Positions 34,946 through 45,823 of a stretch of 64,000 nucleotides of DNA are shown here, one piece after another; position 1 is the stretch's first letter, and each line of letters starts with the position of its first letter. A program made the translations under genes and the position numbers. The notes beneath the pieces are model-generated. The model saw only the letters and a list, made by a program, of their open reading frames with translations, did not search any database and had not been told where the DNA came from. Origin of the DNA: Mytilus californianus (lineage: Eukaryota). Location of the stretch: NCBI RefSeq assembly GCF_021869535.1, contig NW_026262734.1, positions 96,038,001 to 96,102,000 on the forward strand. The letters are read 5' to 3'.

Positions 34946-35169
34946 GTTCCGATTCTAATGCATTACAAAAAGATATAATACGTTAGAGCTTGAAAAAATG
35001 TATAAATTTGAAATAAAATAAAATTCCGCGAAACTTCATATTAGATGATTTTGGCGCTTAAACGTCATGGCTAAACATGGATAAACTAAAGGTTATTACG
35101 TTACCTCTACGATTTAAATTTGGATAAACTCACATCAAAACGCCGATTTTGAGGTAGGTGTTGTTTATT

Positions 35170-36337
35170 TTATTAAAATCAATCGGGTCCAGGACCAATC
35201 TAGTATATCTTATTATAATCCTTCGTAATTAATTCCATTTTTTATATGCATACATTTAGATTAATTTAGAGCTGGTATACTCAGTGTATGATAAATATTT
35301 CTTGTTGTGAAATACATTTTGCAGCATTTATTTCCATATTTTTGAAGAAATTCACACTTGTATCCTTGTAGTATAATTATTGTCTGCGTGTTTCTAGAAT
35401 ACAAGTCCAGATCTGGTCTGTGTTTCTAATACTAAAAGAGGTGTTTCGGTTATGGTCATGTAGACCTAGGCCTATCCTCATCAGGTATCCCTAGCCTATA
35501 TGTTTCCTTTCTTGTAATATTTAGAAGTGTTCGAATTTGATTTCACTTATGGGGATACGACCTCTGTGTATACGTTCGTTTCTTATTTTTCTTCTTTCTG
35601 TTTTTGGGTATTTTTTTCTTTTGTTTTAATCTCTTCTATTAGTTTATTGTGCCTGATATTTTTTATCTTTTCGTTGATTTTATCTGTTTATATCATTTTT
35701 CATCTTTAAATTCGTTAAATACTCTTTTAGATTTGTATGTCTTTTGTATGCAAAACGTTTGCTCATTGCTAATAAATTTAATACTCTATTTGAGAGATTA
35801 AATATCTTATTTTGTTATTCTATTTGAGAACAACTTAATTTGAGAGATTATTTTATTTTTGGTATTCTATTTGAGAATAATTTAGATTAACAGTCTCTAT
35901 TTGAGAGATTGCTATATGTTGTTATTCTATTTGAGAATAACTTGACAATGTATTATCAGTCTCTATTTGACAGATGATTATTATTGTTGAAAAAAAAACA
36001 AAAAAAACCCAGTTTTTTCCTCCTATGTTATAGCGTTAAAATAGATCCTGCAATGTGTGATAGATAAATATGTGTATTTTATCAGTCAAATATTTCTATC
36101 TAATTGCTTCCACCTGATTACAATATCTCGTATGCTCATTGGTTAATTCTATATACGTCATAGATACATGCACGTGTATTTTTTACCTCACCTAACCTAA
36201 ATCCTGAATTGTTTACTATATCTTAAAATAGTTCAGGAGTGCCGTAACAGATACACATACTAATGTATTATATTCTTCTGGATCGATATTACTATTGAAA
36301 ATAAATGGAAAATCCTTTACATACATTGTACATACAT
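35170..36337 (-). mobile_element. Element H, copy 1 (~1.17 kb, non-coding, hammerhead-bearing)
   Basis: Reverse complement of 40621-41796 over its whole length, with scattered substitutions and indels. Confidence 0.9.
35437..35565 (-). ncRNA. Type III hammerhead ribozyme, stem III weakened by a 2-nt deletion
   Basis: Minus strand: GUC, stem I gtatccc/gggatac, CUGAUGA (35484-35478), GAAA (35447-35444), cacctct. The 5' strand of stem III reads agaggtc instead of (ag)aggtgtc. Confidence 0.65.
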
Positions 36338-36356: not shown

Positions 36357-37937
36357 TTTTATGCCCCCGCCGTAGCGGAGGGGGCATTAAGTTTTACCCT
36401 TGTCCGTCTGTACGTACGTACGTACGTCCGTACGTCCCAAAATTGGTTTTTGTTCTCTAACATGAGTTTGCCTCAACCAAATGTTATGACACTTATACAC
36501 GATGCTAACTACCTTAAAACACAGATTAAGTTTGAATTTTGGTGGCGTCACTTCAACCGTTCTAGTCTAGAGTTATGCCCCTTTATAAATTGAAAAATTG
36601 CAAAAAATTTTGTTTCCGTTCTCTTTCTTAAGTTTGCTTCAACCAAGTGTTATGAAACTTATACACAATGCTTATTACCACAAAACACAGATCAAGTGTG
36701 AATTTTAGTGTCGTCACTTTAACCGTTCTTGAGTTATGCCACTTTATAAATGGAAAAATTGTAAAATTTTTAGTTTCCGTTCTCTTACTTAAGTTGCCTC
36801 AACCAAATGTTATGAAACTTATACACAATGCTTATTACCACAAAACACAGATCAAGTTTGAATTTTGGTGTCGTCATTTTAACCGTTCTAGAGTTATGCC
36901 CCTTTATAAATTGAAAAATTGCAAAATTTTTAGTTTCCGTTCTCTAACTTGAATTTGCCTCAACCAAATGTTATGAAACTTATACACAATGCTTATTATC
37001 ACAAAATACAGATCAAGTTCGAATTTTGGTAGCTTCACTCGAACCGTTCTAGAGTTATGCCCCTTCATAAATGGAAAAATTTTAAAATTTTTAGTTTCCG
37101 TTCTCTAACTTAAGTTTGCCTCAACCAAAGTTTATGAAACATATACACAATGCTTATTACCACAAAATAAAGATCAAGTTTGAATATTGGTGGGGGTCAC
37201 TTTTACTGTTCTAGAGTTATGCCACTTTATAAATGGAAAAATTGCAAAATTTTTATTTTCTACTAAATATCAATTTATTTTTAAAATTGGATTTATCTTC
37301 CTTTGTCCATGATTATAATTGAATCAACTACAATTAATGCTTTATACAATGCAATGTTTAATTTTGACTTCCACTGATAAAACACAGATCAAGTTGAATT
37401 TGGGTAGTGTCACTTTAACCATTATTGAGTTATGACCCTTTATAAATCGAAAGATTGCAAAATTTGTAGTTTCCATTCTGTTACTAAAGTTTGTTCCAAC
37501 CAAACATTATGAAACCTATACACAATATTCATTACCACAAAACTAAGATCAAGTACAAATTTTTTGTTTCGGTTTTCGAACTTTAGTTTGCCTCAACCAA
37601 ATGTTATGAAACTTATACACAATGCTTATTACTACATAATACAGATTAAGTACAAAATTTGGTGAGAACACTTTTACCATTCTTGAGTTATGTCCCTTTA
37701 TAAACATAAAAATTGCTGAATTTTTAGTTTCCGTTCTCTAACTTTAGTTTGTCTCAACCAAATGTTATAAAACTTATACACAACCGTTCTAAAGTTATGC
37801 GTGTTTACAAATAGAAAAATTGCTGAATTTTTAGTTTCTACTTAAGTTAGCCTCAACCAAATGTTATGAGACTTACACACAATGCTTATTACCACAAAAC
37901 TCAGATCAAGTTCAAATTTGGGTAGCGTCACTTTTAT
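36357..37937 (+). mobile_element. HINE element with expanded ~161-bp array (3' end missing)
   Basis: 5' atgcccccgccgtagcggagggggca stem-loop, (GTAC/GTCC)n, units anchored at 36471, 36637, 36797, 36958 and 37119. Confidence 0.9.
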
Positions 37938-38816: not shown

Positions 38817-39988
38817 TTTATGCCCCCGCCGTAGCGGTTGGGGCATTAAGTTTTACCCTTGTCCGTCCGTACGTACGTACGTCCCAAAATTGGTTTCCGT
38901 TCTCTAACTTGAGTTTGCTTCGACCAAATGATATGAAACTTATAGACAATGCTTATTACCACAAAACACAGAATAAGTTTGAATTTTGGTGGCGTCACTT
39001 AAACCGTTCTAGAGTTATGCCCCTTTATAAATGGAAAAATTGTAAAATTGCTAGTTTCCTTTCTCTAACTTAAGTTTGCCTCAACCAAATATTATGAAAC
39101 TTATACACACTGCTTATAACCACAAAATAAAGATCAAGTTTGAATTTTGGTGGCATCACTTTAACAGTTCTAGAGTTATGCCCTTTATAAATGGAAAAAT
39201 TGCAAAATTTTTATTTTCTTCTAAATATCAAGTAATTTTTAAAATTTGAGTTATCTTCCTTTGTCCATGATTATAGTTCAATCAACTACACTCAATGCTT
39301 TATACAATGCAATGTATAATTTTGACTTCCACTGATAAAACACAGATCAAGTTGAATTTGGGTAGTGTCACTTTAACCATTATTGAGTTATGCCCCTTTA
39401 TAAATCGAAAGATTGCAAAATTTTTAGTTTCCATTCTGTAACTTAAGTTTGCCCAAACCAAACATTATGAAACCTATACAAAATATTCATTACCACAAAA
39501 CTAAGATTAAGTACAAATTTTTGTTTCCGTTTTCTAACTTTAGTTTGCCTCAACCAAATGTTATGAACCTTATACACAATGCTTATTACTACATAGTACA
39601 GATTAAGTACAAAATTTGGTGGCGACACTTTTACCATTCTTGAGTGATGTCCCTTTATAAACATAAAAATTGCTGAATTTTTCGTTTCCGTTCTCTGACT
39701 TTAGTTTGTCGCAACCAAATGTTATAAAACTTATACACAACTGTTCTAGAGTTATGCGTGTTTACAAATAGAAAAATTGTTGAATTTTTAGTTTCTGTTC
39801 TCTACTTAAGTTAGCCTCAACCAAATGTTATGAGACTTACACACAATGCTTATTACTACAAAACTCAGATCAAGTTCAAATTTGGGTAGCGTCACTTTTA
39901 CCGTTCTTCAGTTATGTCCCTTTATAACTATATGATATGCAAGCAGGGGCATCATCTGTGTCCACATGTGGTCACTATCCACATTTAT
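38817..39988 (+). mobile_element. Complete HINE element, same family as 36357-37937
   Basis: 5' atgcccccgc, 3' inverted gcaggggcat at 39943-39952, terminal hairpin, fewer tandem units. Confidence 0.9.
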
Positions 39989-39989
39989 T

Positions 39990-40095
39990 TCTTTTGTTTT
40001 AAACTCTTCTATTAGTTTATTGTGCTTGATATATTCATCTTTTGTTTGATTTTATCTGTTTATATCATTTTTCATCTTTAAATTCGTTAAATACT
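39990..40095 (-). mobile_element. Internal fragment of element H
   Basis: Matches 35617-35725 in the same orientation. Confidence 0.8.
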
Positions 40096-40620
40096 GTCTT
40101 GTTATTAACTAGACAATCTCCATATATGCTTATTATAACCCTTTCTCTAATTACTTAACAAAACCATGGTAAGGGACAAAAAACTGAAATATAGATTTGA
40201 AAAAGCTATATAGAACAACTCTTGACCAGAGGAAGGGACATTGAAACTACATTAAACAAATGAGAAAAGTAAAAGGGAAGATCAATAAATAAATTTACAA
40301 TGAAGTAACAAATAATTATGTCCGAAACAAATGTGCCAGATGAAAAGAAAATAGGAAGTACTAAACAGGATATGACAATTAAAGTCAAATGACAAGAAAT
40401 ACTAATTGCATCAACAGAATGTTATAAATTTCTAAACTTAGACAGATCAAATTTGATTCTCACGGGGATTCGACCACCTGTATATTCGACTGAAAAATAA
40501 TAGGTTTTTCTATCAAATACTAAACAAATGAAAAATACTAATTGACTATAACTATCAAACTATAATTCTATAACTGACCAGTAAATAATACTATTATTTT
40601 AATAGAGATACGAGATACAC

Positions 40621-41796
40621 ATATATATACAATGGATGTAAAGGATTTTCTATTTATTTTCATTGGTATTATCGATCCAGAAGAAGAACATAATACATTA
40701 GTATGTGTATCTGTTACGGCACTCCTGAACTATATTAAGATGTAGTAAACAATTCATGATTTAGGTTAGTTGAGGTCAAGAATGCACGTGCATGTATCTG
40801 TGACGTATATAGAATTAACCAATCAGCAAACGAGATCTTGTAATCACGTGGAAGCAATTAGATAGAAATATTTGACTGATAAAATACACATACTTATCTA
40901 TCACACCTTGCAGGATCTATTTTAACGCTATAACATAGGAAGAAAATCTGTTTTGTCTTTTTTTAAAAACAATAATAATCATCTGTCAAATAGAAATTGA
41001 TAATGCAAGTTATTCACAAATAGAATAACAACTTCTAGTAATCTCTCAAATAGAGACTGCTAATCTAGGTTATTCTCAAATAGAATACCAAAAATAAAGT
41101 AATCTCTCAAACAGAGACTGCTTAACTAAGTTGTTCTCAAATAAAATAACAAAATAAGATATTTAATCTCTCAAATAGAGTATTAAATTTATTAGCAATG
41201 AGCAAACGTTTTGCATACAAAAGACATACAAATCTAAAAGGGTATTTAACGAATTTAAAGATGAAAAATGATATAAACAGATAAAATCAAAGAAAAGATA
41301 AAAAAATATCAGGCACAATAAACTAATAGAAGAGATTAAAACAAAAGAAAAAAATACCCAAAAACAGAAAGAAGAAAAAGAAAGAAACGAATGTATAAAC
41401 AGGTGTCGTATCCCCATAGGTGAAATCAAATTCGAACTATTCTAAATATTACAAGAAAGGAAACATATAGGCTAGGGATACCTGATGAGGATAGGCCTAG
41501 GTCTACATGACCATAACCGAAACACCTCTTTTAGTATTAGAAACACTGACCAGATCGGGATTTCTATTCTAAAAATACGCACACAATACTTATACTACAA
41601 GCATGCAAATGTGAATTTCTTAAAAAATATGAAAATAAATGCTGGAAAATGTATTCCATAACAAAAAATATTTATCATACACTGAGTATACCAGCTCTAA
41701 ATTACTCTAAATGTATGCACATAGAAAATTGAATTAATTTCGAAGGATTGTAATACGAGATACTGGATTGGTCCTGGACCCGATTGATTTTAATAA
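40621..41796 (+). mobile_element. Element H, copy 2 (~1.17 kb, non-coding, hammerhead-bearing)
   Basis: Inverted counterpart of 35170-36337. Confidence 0.9.
41401..41527 (+). ncRNA. Type III hammerhead ribozyme, complete core
   Basis: Stem III aggtg(41401-05)/cacct(41523-27), GUC with cleavage after 41407, stem I gtatccc(41408-14)/gggatac(41475-81), CUGAUGA 41482-88, stem II closed by G41489-C41518, GAAA 41519-22. Confidence 0.85.
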
Positions 41797-43625
41797 TATT
41801 GTTTTATTTTCGATAATATTGTAGTAATCGAACATTTGTTGATCCAAGCAATTCAAAATGACGGGTCCCTCTTTAGTTACAGGATGTCAACTGTGGATTT
41901 GATGGTAACATTTGGCTAATGAAAAAAAATTTTACATAAAAATTGCATTAGAATAAAGTGTATATGATATGCCTTTTTCAATATCACACCCGTATCAATC
42001 CTCAATTAATATAATCTACCGAGCAGAGCGCTTTGGATTATATTGGGGGCATCTAATATTTTCTATTTATATTAAGTAATTTTTCTGGAGGTTATTTTTG
42101 CGTTTTGCAAACACAATGTTTGACACTGCCTTCCAGGATTTTATCTTCCAGAAGCACGACAATTTGTCATGTTTCTGTAATCCATCCAAGTCTATCTTTT
42201 TGACAGGATTTTGAATTAGGCTTGTTATAAAGCTGTCGTCTGACATATGCATGACATATTTGCAACTGTCAATCATTAGTTTAATCGGGAAAAATAAAAA
42301 TTCGAAAGTGACTTTTTTTATCTAACTATTCTAGAAACTAGGTGTGAGAAGACTGTCAGCGTGTTCCTTTTTGATTCGATTATTTTCAGAAATATATATA
42401 TAGTGTCTGTTTAAAACAATGACAATATGTAATCTCATTCTTACTTCATAATGATGTCATACAGACGTGATTCTTTTATGTTTTGAGTTAATTGCATTTA
42501 CAAAATACAAGAATTAATCACACTTAATTCGGTCAAATGAAAAAACATGCCATCATTCAAATGTTTATATTGAATTTAATTTGTCCAATTGCTGTTAGTT
42601 AAGACATTACTGAGATTTTGTTTATTAGTGGTGAAAATTGCAATAGAATATGTTTTACAAAATCAATCTTGATAAAGTTTTAATTGCGGTTTTTGTATGG
42701 AACATTTCCTAAAATCGTCATAAACAACATGAAATTATTGTCTGTTGTTCAACAATCACAATATGAATGTTGGCTGAGATTTATGAATATAAGTATCAGT
42801 GGAAAAACTATTACCAAATTTATTGTGATTTTTTTTATCCATTAGATATTCACGGCAATGGGTACAATTCATTACCACAACAGCTATTCAATTGCCAATT
42901 ACATGAACAACAGGAACATTCAGTACAAATCAAATGCCAGACGATTGACCAATGGGAACCCCCTTGATATTAACTTATGTTCGAACTCCGTAATGTACTC
43001 CTGACCTGTTACTTTCATGGTCAATATATTCAATCAATTACTTTATAATATGGATGAAATTTAGTATAAGTTTTTCAAACTTTATGATATCTATCTACAT
43101 ATAGCCAAGCAGTAAGTTTATTTCAGTAATGAAATATTGCGTCTATCGATTTTGTAAATCTTTAATCAATGCAAAAGAACCAACGAACCATCAAATTCAA
43201 AATCAAGGAAAAGTAACACTAAGAAACAAAAACCTACTGGTGTATCAAAGATTTCATTTTGAATATCTATGTGAGATAATAATTTTAATGTCTTAGTAGG
43301 GAATATTTGTCGCTTATTTATTGAAAACGATCTGATGTGGATAAATATCAATTGTACATTTTGGAAAATCTGGATTGTTTATAAAGTATCTAGCATCTGT
43401 GTATTTTGTTGCATTGTTAAAAAGATCTATAAAGTGAGGTTTTGTTGGGTTGCTCGAACGTTTCGTAGCTTTGATATGAATGCGGATTCATAACAGCATA
43501 AGTAAAAATTTGCAATAATGGGGCAGAATTTGTGAATAGCCAAATCAATCATAGGGTTTGGCGAATGAGTTCGAACCTTATTTTCTTAATAGCTTATTAC
43601 TGTATCAACAGATAATCTAAAACAG

Positions 43626-44137: not shown

Positions 44138-45823
44138 ATGGCCAGTAATGTTAGTATATGTGGTGTCTGTGAACATCGTGATGTTACCAAACCATCAGTA
44201 GTCTGGTGTTCAGAATGTGAGGAAGGACTATGCGAAGATTGTAAGGAGCATCACAGTTTTTCCAAGGCAACGAGAAATCATGAAATTTTTCCCATTGATG
44301 AATATATGAAGCTACCTGTAAAGATTTTGAAAGTAGCGCAGTTTTGCGACAAACATAAAGAGAAATACGATTTTTTCTGTAGAAAACACGACTGTCCATG
44401 CTGTAGGAAATGTGTAGAGGATCACAACGGCTGTAAAGATTTAACTGATATCAGGAATATGATCCACAATGTGAAATCCTCAGCTGCGTTTCAGGAAATC
44501 GAACACGCCTTGTCAGAAACCGCCGAGAACATCAAAAGCATCCGTATAAATCGTGAGCAAAACCTTGCAACACTTGCAGAGAAGACAAAGATTGTTGAAT
44601 TGGAAATTCGGCAATTTCGAAACAAAATTAATGACCATCTTGATAAACTTCAAGATGAGTTATTAAAGGAACTTAAAGCGGAGGAAGAAAACAGAAGTAG
44701 CAAAATTCAACAACTATTGACGTCAATAATGCAGAGAGAAAAGGAGATTCTTGAATACAAAGTTAATATTGCAAATACAAAGCGATATGCCTCGGACCTG
44801 CAATCATTCATTGCGATGAAACAAATCGAAAAAGATATTTTTAAAGAAGAGAGTTTTATCCAATCAATCAGCAAAAGCGAGCAAATGCATCAAATCGATA
44901 TATCGTGTACGATGAACACAGCATTGCAGGAATTAGCCACTACTACGAAGACGTTTGGAGAAGTTGTTGCGAGTACCAGTGCATGTAATGTATCCATCCA
45001 GAAAAGGAGAAATAAACAAGCTCAGATAATTGTACCTCCTTCAACAAATGATTTCGATGATGTAAGTCTCAAGGTAAAACAAACAATACAAACAAAGCTG
45101 TCAAACGTTTGTGGATGTACCTTCCTTCCTGATGGTAAAATGATTTTCTCATGTTGTACTAGCGATCAAATACGGGTTTTAAAGCCGAATGGTTCATATG
45201 ATTTTGATCTGAACAACATTGGGCCTGTTTTGGACGTGGTATATATTGGAGATAATTCTGTAGCTGTTACATCAGGTGGAACTGCAGGTTCAAAGCAGAT
45301 CAATATAATAGATGTTCAAAACAGAAAAGTAAAAAAAACATTGAATGTCAATTCCCCCAATAACGGAGTAACATTCAAAGATGGAAAGTTGATTTATTGT
45401 GCAAGAGAGCAGGGACTAAAGATGATCAGTCTCAGTGATGAATCTATAACCAGTATCACCACTAGTAAAATGTCAAGTGAGGGAAACGTAGCCATCCATG
45501 ACGACAAGCTGTACTACACAAACGAAAAAAATCACAATGTCACCTGTTGTGATTTTCATGGTAACACAATGTGGATATTCAACGAAAGTAGTGCCCTGAG
45601 CTATCCATGTGGTATATCTGTCGACAATGATGGGAATGTATATGTAGCGGGAGTACGGTCTCACAATGTGGTCGTTATTTCTACAGATGGCCAACGCCAT
45701 AGAATACTATTATCGAGGAAAGATGGACTGGTCTGTCCAACAGCTGTGGAGTATGACCGATTGAACAATAAACTTTTGGTTGCCAATAATTATGGTAACG
45801 CTTTCGTGTATGATGTTGTATGA
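44138..45823 (+). CDS. RING-less TRIM-like protein: B-box1, B-box2, coiled coil, NHL-like beta-propeller (561 aa)
   Basis: CGVC...WCSECEEGLCEDCKEHH...H (B-box1), CDKH...FCRKHDCPCCRKC...H..C (B-box2), heptad-rich middle, C-terminal YPCGISVDNDGNVYV / PTAVEYD NHL-type blades. The coding sequence is a single exon. Confidence 0.95.
   Translation: MASNVSICGVCEHRDVTKPSVVWCSECEEGLCEDCKEHHSFSKATRNHEIFPIDEYMKLPVKILKVAQFCDKHKEKYDFFCRKHDCPCCRKCVEDHNGCKDLTDIRNMIHNVKSSAAFQEIEHALSETAENIKSIRINREQNLATLAEKTKIVELEIRQFRNKINDHLDKLQDELLKELKAEEENRSSKIQQLLTSIMQREKEILEYKVNIANTKRYASDLQSFIAMKQIEKDIFKEESFIQSISKSEQMHQIDISCTMNTALQELATTTKTFGEVVASTSACNVSIQKRRNKQAQIIVPPSTNDFDDVSLKVKQTIQTKLSNVCGCTFLPDGKMIFSCCTSDQIRVLKPNGSYDFDLNNIGPVLDVVYIGDNSVAVTSGGTAGSKQINIIDVQNRKVKKTLNVNSPNNGVTFKDGKLIYCAREQGLKMISLSDESITSITTSKMSSEGNVAIHDDKLYYTNEKNHNVTCCDFHGNTMWIFNESSALSYPCGISVDNDGNVYVAGVRSHNVVVISTDGQRHRILLSRKDGLVCPTAVEYDRLNNKLLVANNYGNAFVYDVV

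Follow-up and report, generated by a model that had tools for sequence, protein, structure and literature searches.

The stretch of DNA analysed here, referred to below as the window, comprises 64,000 nucleotides (nt) of the genome of the mussel Mytilus californianus (NCBI RefSeq assembly GCF_021869535.1, contig NW_026262734.1, positions 96,038,001 to 96,102,000 of the forward strand), and all positions are counted from its first letter. On the plus strand, at 40092–41797, lies a copy of a non-coding, non-autonomous repeated element of about 1.7 kilobases (kb), which appears to be full length at its 5' side because the start at 40092 is common to four other loci, and in which no open reading frame (ORF) of 80 or more amino acids was detected on the plus strand. 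Close to its 3' end, at 41401–41527 on the same strand, this element carries a complete hammerhead ribozyme motif of type III. The putative self-cleavage of this motif, and its association with a family of retroelements that encode a reverse transcriptase (RT), are the subject of this report.

The hammerhead motif and the element that carries it

Read in the 5' to 3' direction, the motif consists of the 5' strand of helix III (AGGUGU, 41401–41406), the predicted cut site, the helix I hairpin, the first core strand, the helix II hairpin, GAAA and the 3' strand of helix III (ACACCU, 41522–41527), which is the order of parts of a type III hammerhead. The two strands of helix III include the U16.1–A15.1 pair (U41406–A41522), and C17 corresponds to C41407, which places the predicted scissile bond between 41407 and 41408. 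Helix I is formed by 7 base pairs (bp) between GUAUCCC (41408–41414) and GGGAUAC (41475–41481) and is closed by a 60-nt insertion (41415–41474), into which most of the shared sequence variants inside the motif fall. The catalytic strand from C3 to A9 (CUGAUGA, 41482–41488) is followed by the helix II domain (41489–41518), with the closing pairs G41489–C41518 and G41490–C41517 and an apical hairpin, GGUC/GACC (41500–41503/41509–41512), and then by G12, A13 and A14 plus A15.1 (GAAA, 41519–41522). The full invariant core (C3 U4 G5 A6 N7 G8 A9, G12 A13 A14, A15.1–U16.1 and H17) is therefore present. An initial annotation of the sequence had placed the ribozyme at 41401–41527 with cleavage after C41407, and an independent descriptor scan yielded the same coordinates and cut position; the core that it described, with stems III, I (7 bp) and II, the apical ggtc/gacc hairpin and GAAA, can all be read in the sequence, and the extension of stem I by tag/cta that it also described turned out to be private to the window copy, G41419 being A in nearly all other copies.

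The scan with the type III descriptor covered both strands of the window and returned 41401–41527 as the sole match. Applied to 40 Mb of order-1 Markov sequence, the descriptor gave two loose matches and none of equal quality, and analytic estimates of the chance expectation came to about 1e-4 per window and to the order of 0.04–2, up to a few, per genome of 1.65 Gb (3.3 Gb for both strands). Because chance matches are expected at the genome scale, the motif by itself is no proof, and further evidence is needed.

The element belongs to a large family, whose candidate members in the genome of the window number more than 312. The 3'-terminal 28-mer is present in 296 copies, so that the family has at least 296 members, the 25-mer directly 3' of the cut site in 102, and a perfect 5' half of the ribozyme in 39. 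Comparison of 30 loci revealed a 3' end fixed at about 41797 (...GATTGATTTTAATA) and variable points of 5' truncation, the longest forms beginning at 40092. Some copies form head-to-tail arrays with a linker of about 34–40 nt (three units in the array at L031), the tandem unit of the non-coding form measuring 1.75–1.9 kb, and others have a head-to-head inverted partner. The window copy is one example of the latter arrangement, with an inverted fragment equivalent to 41242–41355 at 39983–40095 (minus strand; self-match of 93% identity) standing head to head with the 5' end of the element. This architecture fits the hallmarks of Penelope-like insertions as described in the literature, namely strong 5' truncation, partial tandems, an inverted 5'-truncated partner and a 30–40-bp extension (PMC8557442). 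A second, 5'-truncated and inverted copy (35167–36337, minus strand, 91% identity) has a hammerhead at 35439–35565 (minus strand) with an intact core and two mismatches in helix III (AGAGGU), and in two divergent old copies (L135 and L137, about 75% identical) the cores are decayed, as expected of dead copies. The non-coding part of the element also contains an internal tandem repeat of about 61 nt (3.2 units, 40981–41180), which confuses the local alignment of 5' ends around 41019–41037.

The last 590 nt or so of the element (41211–41797, plus strand) constitute a module, ending in the same fixed 3' terminus, that is shared with the 3' untranslated region (UTR) of RT-encoding copies. The RT ORFs abut the equivalent of about 41211, and in L034, L035/L004/L022 and L010 they run straight into the module; an apparent cluster of 5' ends at about 41211 is in fact this junction between ORF and 3' UTR. 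The ORFs upstream of the module contain the motifs IIIKKADKNS, LPKIHK, GRPIVS and YRDDGF and match Pfam RVT_1, and inspection of these motifs suggests that the RT is of the Penelope type. A coiled-coil/RGG ORF1 is located upstream of the RT ORF. Because the RT ORFs run into the shared module, the window copy can be regarded as a non-autonomous derivative that retained the tail of an RT element.

Homologs of the RT with 39–89% identity were found in M. edulis, M. trossulus, M. coruscus and marine metagenome or Logan contigs (L140:3060-6007, L268:33-3091, L143:58-2106 and L142:224-2168, among the loci of the lineage). Their ORFs end in ...AYKRHKNLKEYL... (AYK(R/K)HKNLKEYL across the 39–89%-identical lineages), at the point where canonical elements continue into GIY-YIG, and neither Pfam searches at E ≤ 1 nor a motif scan detected a GIY-YIG endonuclease in the sampled ORFs, among which there is no confirmed intact full-length element. 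Although the endonuclease was not found in the RT lineage, the copies are spread along chromosomes and are not at telomeres. The hammerhead follows the RT stop codon by about 80–360 nt in the sampled RT-bearing copies and precedes the 3' end of the element by about 390 nt in the window lineage. A different RT-like ORF (VVVPADKAPNNIVF, IPKLHK), adjoining a heavily truncated copy at L109:214-972 (minus strand), belongs to a further lineage of retroelements that carry Penelope-like motifs in this genome.

Copies that begin at the predicted cut site

Copies were sampled with the 25 nt that begin directly after the predicted scissile bond, so as to leave the upstream sequence unprejudged. The 96 distinct copies so obtained comprise 53 that have CAGGUGUC upstream and 43 that break off precisely at G41408. 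When the junctions were pooled over all sampled loci, at least 8 independent classes were recognised at this nucleotide. In group A the neighbour of G41408 is another copy's 3' end with 11 nt added, and in group B it is an unrelated host repeat; inverted copies adjoin G41408 in three further classes, truncated at 40494 in the first (L036), truncated at 40807 in the second (L013/14) and meeting it with their complete 5' end in the third (L126); and the remaining partners are an inverted RT ORF (L103 type), a tandem linker (L063) and unrelated DNA (L077). The Poisson probability of at least 8 classes at one pre-specified nucleotide ranges from 1e-17 to 3e-14. A second sample, anchored at the 3' terminus, contained 7 more 5' ends within 41409–41426, against a background of about 15 ends over the next 334 nt.

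The simplest reading of these junctions is that RNA templates ended at G41408, as cleavage after C17 predicts, and the start of many copies at the cut site is a strong but indirect sign, drawn from genomic sequence, of cutting in living cells. As sources of the boundary, a site of transcription initiation and the beginning of an older short element are both disfavoured, because each would have to coincide by chance, to the base, with the site predicted from the motif. Two more specific origins were also rejected. A SINE-like (short interspersed nuclear element) start driven by RNA polymerase III (Pol III) was discarded since the B-box-like TTCGAAC is lost between subfamilies, and pausing of the RT at a structure was discarded since the pause is expected 3' of the helices and not one base past the end of helix I.

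Group B deserves separate description. Its members (L037, L042, L097, L098, L101 and about 25 others) are 730-nt composites, in which a foreign 5' part of about 160 nt is followed by the module from 41408, with C3 of the core changed to U, and by a foreign 3' part of about 195 nt; judging from these sequences, the group would be a young family, the amplification of which goes on with a dead ribozyme. Relatives of group A have internal tandem repeats that are offset by about 110–270 bp upstream of the module. A back-joint from 41795 to 41408 was observed in sequencing reads and is found also in a DNA-like run and in genomic copies (group A); since the joint is genomic, it is no proof of circular RNA.

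Hammerheads in diverged lineages

The type III descriptor was also run on contigs that encode related RTs, and hammerheads with a long helix I insertion were found behind the RT stop in four of them. One is in M. trossulus (L140, RT 56% identical); another, from a TARA scaffold (L145), accompanies an RT with 64% identity; a third, in M. edulis (L268), has 8 bp in helix I, 4 bp in helix II, 5+4 bp in helix III and an insertion of about 85 nt; and the fourth, also in M. edulis (L267), belongs to the same lineage as the window. The RT identity of the diverged hammerhead-bearing lineages (M. edulis, M. trossulus and the TARA scaffold) is thus 56–64%. When the tails of the lineages were compared by BLAST, 41469–41526, the region of the ribozyme core, was the sole alignable part of the 3' UTRs. 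The window's genome contains sister lineages as well, with 16 exact matches to the pattern. One of these lineages (helix I GUGCCCU, insertion of about 85 nt) occurs on contig C87 at 3174125, 3179310 and 3184495 (minus strand), with an exact period of 5185 bp, and this repeat is probably a tandem of full-length RT elements. A pattern scan of metagenomes returned 120 loci, none of which is related to the family.

In an alignment of six sequences, five of them distinct (alignment A1), the core positions, including CUGAUGA and GAAA, are invariant in 6/6, and the hammerhead structure accounts for 91.8% paired cells, as opposed to 31–47% when the partners are slid by 1–3 columns. Six pairs change on both sides, with compensatory changes in helices I, II and III, so that the stems I–III proposed in the initial annotation are supported by covariation across lineages within these five distinct sequences. 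In helix I, pair 4 alternates between U-A and C-G and pair 7 between C-G and U-A, and the insertion that closes this helix varies from about 35 to 85 nt in the other lineages. Four inner pairs of helix III are invariant, and its outer pairs covary or extend. In helix II of the TARA lineage, 10.2–11.2 changes from G-C to A-U and 10.1–11.1 from G-C to G-U, and the apical hairpin is kept. RNAalifold, with no structure supplied, recovered helices III and I; it paired the GG of helix II with an internal CC instead, and the A-U change of the TARA sequence favours the hammerhead closure.

The alignment also displays conservation outside the core, in GGCUAGG before the 3' strand of helix I and in CCUAGG/CCAUGG/CCUUGG within helix II. 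The latter is a 6-nt palindrome, CCUAGG at 41496–41501 in the window (columns 137–142 of A1), and CCAUGG in the TARA lineage, where it is kept by a double change, but the sequence reads CCUUGG in L268; the palindrome may be a dimerisation site, a site of tertiary contact or a chance feature.

Elsewhere in the window, a satellite-like tandem repeat of 161 bp fills much of the gap between the inverted copies (36452–37260, 38893–39209 and 39418–39617). An ORF of 561 amino acids (44138–45823, plus strand), located 2.3 kb downstream of the element, encodes two B-box zinc fingers and a C-terminal beta-propeller, and represents a TRIM/NHL-like host gene unrelated to the element.

Interpretation and comparison with known systems

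The sequence comparisons make it likely, in our judgement, that 41401–41527 belongs to a genuine class of self-cleaving type III hammerheads. The hammerhead appears to be part of the 3' UTR/pseudo-long terminal repeat (pseudo-LTR) module of a Penelope-type RT family of Mytilus, of which the window copy would be a non-autonomous 1.7-kb derivative. The initial annotation had suggested a self-cleaving, possibly retrozyme-like element; the repeat family, the copies that start at the cut site and the conserved ribozyme agree with the first part of this suggestion, and as to the second, the element is not a classical retrozyme built of short tandem type I units.

Several observations weigh against an active ribozyme. 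Within the motif, helix II of the window lineage is irregular, with two closing pairs followed by a large internal loop, and no consistent pairing scheme for a loop–loop tertiary contact between helices I and II could be found in alignment A1; moreover, all the covariation derives from the five distinct sequences of that alignment. Both the Rfam search and the RNA folding suggested in the initial annotation gave unfavourable results. The Hammerhead_3 model (RF00008) had no match in the window at the gathering threshold, nor at E ≤ 10 on 41350–41590, and the Rfam hammerhead models did not match the four related loci of other lineages either. In folding of the isolated 127-nt RNA, there was no stability signal (z = 0.18), and the hammerhead fold (−18.7 kcal/mol) lies 5.4 kcal/mol above the minimum-energy structure (−24.1 kcal/mol), in which an 8-bp helix between 41400–41407 and 41477–41484 (CAGGUGUC/GAUACCUG) competes with helices III and I. 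Shared-variant columns within the family are fewer in the core and stems (1/41) than elsewhere (186/459; Fisher P = 8e-8), but the copies were picked by queries that overlap the ribozyme, so that the comparison is biased and was given no weight. The 41 RNA reads that could be placed on the element, from about 6% of one raw RNA run, show no pile-up of ends and are too few to inform. Finally, the copies that start at 41408 lack the 5' strand of helix III, which means that copies made from cut RNA cannot cut again, and group B, the core of which carries the C3 to U change, is the most homogeneous subfamily, which implies that amplification is possible without a ribozyme in every copy.

The silence of Rfam can be attributed to the model, which has 54 positions and no room for a helix I insertion of 35–85 nt (60 nt in the window). 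Elsewhere in this genome RF00008 does pick up canonical type III motifs: five compact matches of 55 nt above the gathering score (C24:638932-638986, C155:449790-449844, C94:5651383-5651437, C139:494558-494612 and C147:507987-508041), unrelated in position to the family studied here, indicate that canonical type III hammerheads also exist in the mussel assembly. As to folding, in the L268 lineage the hammerhead fold (−27.0 kcal/mol) and the minimum-energy fold (−27.3 kcal/mol) are practically equal. The 8-bp alternative helix is also possible in L268 and may correspond to an 'off' conformation.

That the motif is a chance resemblance, with CUGAUGA, GAAA and complementary flanks brought together in an AT-rich repeat, is strongly disfavoured and in our view very improbable. 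The information in the descriptor is limited, with the order of 0.04–2 equally good matches per genome by the analytic estimate, and Rfam is silent, yet two observations owe nothing to the way in which the motif was discovered: four lineages have it downstream of the RT, with compensatory changes, and 5' ends are in excess at the cut site. A hammerhead-derived fold that no longer cuts, serving for instance as a recognition element for the RT, with the boundary at 41408 being the place where transcription starts or where an older short element once began, would account for the weak helix II and the fact that the hammerhead is not the minimum-energy fold in the window lineage, for the lack of RNA ends among the 41 reads, and for the success of subfamilies with dead cores (group B with C3 to U, and a lineage with CUCAUGA). 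This possibility nevertheless seems distinctly improbable to us: the scissile bond predicted from the motif alone falls on the boundary to the very nucleotide, an agreement with a prior of about 1 in 400 to 1 in 1700; lineages whose tails cannot otherwise be aligned have all 11 core nucleotides unchanged; the 7 nt upstream of the boundary, which complete helix III and supply U16.1 and C17, are conserved or extended in other lineages; and there is no conserved Pol III box, the TTCGAAC-like stretch being lost in subfamilies.

The remaining alternative makes the same ribozyme claim and is a variant of the preferred explanation, so that the confidence placed in the two is not additive. In a retrozyme-style cycle, two successive hammerhead cuts would free an RNA of unit length (about 1.75–1.9 kb for the non-coding form and about 5.2 kb for the RT form), which would be circularised by ligation and copied by rolling-circle reverse transcription into head-to-tail arrays. 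The arrays with a constant linker (three units in L031), the 5185-bp period of the sister lineage on C87 and the junctions between the 3' end and 41408 (group A, joint 41795 to 41408) are what such a cycle would produce, and animal retrozymes have been argued to descend from Penelope-like elements (bioRxiv 10.64898/2026.07.22.740005). However, every insertion ends at about 41797 and not at the cut site, the joint is equally present in genomic copies and in the DNA-like run and so gives no evidence of a circle, and the units far exceed the known animal retrozymes in length; we therefore consider this cycle unlikely.

Under the preferred explanation, a self-cleaving hammerhead in the tail of a Penelope-type element, helices III, I and II would assemble in the transcript around the CUGAUGA/GAAA core, a step for which the sequence features are in place, and the RNA would then cut itself after C41407. 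The 3' product, beginning with G41408, would keep nearly the whole ribozyme together with the 3'-terminal region for reverse transcription, and the RT copying the cut RNA would run off or switch template at G41408, which would explain the copies with a 5' end exactly at this nucleotide. In the genome, the partners of these ends are unrelated DNA, the 3' end of another copy or an inverted copy standing head to head. The role of the ribozyme would most likely be to fix where tandem, pseudo-LTR or read-through transcripts begin, and the short 390-nt copies would be a by-product. With low confidence, we also put forward the idea that hammerhead-cut ends are building blocks of Penelope-type insertions: on reaching the 5'-OH end, the RT might jump to a second RNA or cDNA and thereby make the head-to-head junctions and those between 3' end and cut site, in an RT lineage that apparently lacks an endonuclease of its own. 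If true, this would provide a mechanistic role for Penelope-like hammerheads and define a new endonuclease-less clade with type III hammerheads.

The genomic footprint at the scissile bond would tie cleavage both to the template of retrotransposition and to the way in which inverted and tandem junctions arise, and the class would accompany an RT lineage with no endonuclease found in the sampled ORFs. Because the long helix I insertion hides the class from the Rfam model, similar ribozymes may be widely overlooked. The initial annotation had noted that type III is unusual for animals, which agrees with the literature, where the hammerheads of animals and of Penelope-like elements are of type I (PMC7229834, PMC7761336) and type III is typical of plants, viroid-like RNAs and some agents related to hepatitis delta virus (HDV) (PMC7229834, PMC7761336). 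Those of Penelope-like elements and Terminons are minimal type I hammerheads with an unclear role (PMC4209133, PMC8557442). Our literature search for the combination of Penelope-like elements and type III hammerheads found no paper that reports it, and the Mytilus class would thus add the type III topology to elements in which only the minimal type I has been known.

Among the closest known systems are the Penelope-like and Terminon elements with type I hammerheads (PMC4209133; Lunse et al. 2017; Arkhipova et al. 2017), which share with the Mytilus class a hammerhead near the 3' end, a pseudo-LTR region, an element with a Penelope-type RT, and insertions with 5' truncation, partial tandems and inverted partners. 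Their hammerheads, however, are without a real helix III and cut as dimers, whereas the Mytilus class is of type III with monomeric geometry, having 6–9 bp in helix III and 6–8 bp plus the 35–85-nt insertion in helix I, and its sampled ORFs yielded no GIY-YIG endonuclease. The LTR retrozymes of plants (PMC4918200) resemble the Mytilus elements in the type III topology and in being non-autonomous retroelements that borrow an RT, but they are characterised by two hammerhead-bearing LTRs, a primer-binding site (PBS), a polypurine tract (PPT), 4-bp target duplications, GC-rich circles of 600–1000 nt and mobilisation of the Gypsy type. Of these traits, neither an LTR pair flanking the window copy nor a target duplication at L077 was seen, PBS and PPT not having been searched for, and the repeats of the family are, unlike an LTR pair, tandem or inverted copies of the whole 3' part. 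The non-LTR retrozymes of animals, including those of Mytilus galloprovincialis (PMC7229834), are likewise non-coding, AT-rich, tandem-forming, hammerhead-bearing and probably mobilised by Penelope-like elements. They consist of short tandem units, 150–450 bp in length, with type I hammerheads (PMC7229834) and expression as circular RNA, in contrast to the type III hammerheads, the 1.75–1.9-kb units and the tail shared with an identifiable RT element in the Mytilus class.

In a functional respect, the HDV-like ribozymes that head the R2, RTE and L1Tc retrotransposons behave similarly: after the cut they remain with the 3' product, and they determine the 5' terminus of the RNA template for reverse transcription (PMC7761336). 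They belong to another ribozyme class and need no upstream sequence, whereas a type III hammerhead leaves the 5' strand of helix III behind, so that copies of the cut RNA are unable to recut. A discontinuous type III-like hammerhead, in which a long helix I insertion parts the substrate and enzyme strands, is said to have been described in 2008 by Martick and colleagues in the 3' UTRs of mammalian Clec2 genes; reportedly it resides in a host gene, has an insertion of hundreds of nt and bears no sequence relationship to the Mytilus class. The HDV-like ribozymes of R2, RTE and L1Tc, together with the Clec2 3'-UTR hammerhead, are the closest functional analogues of the hammerhead described here.

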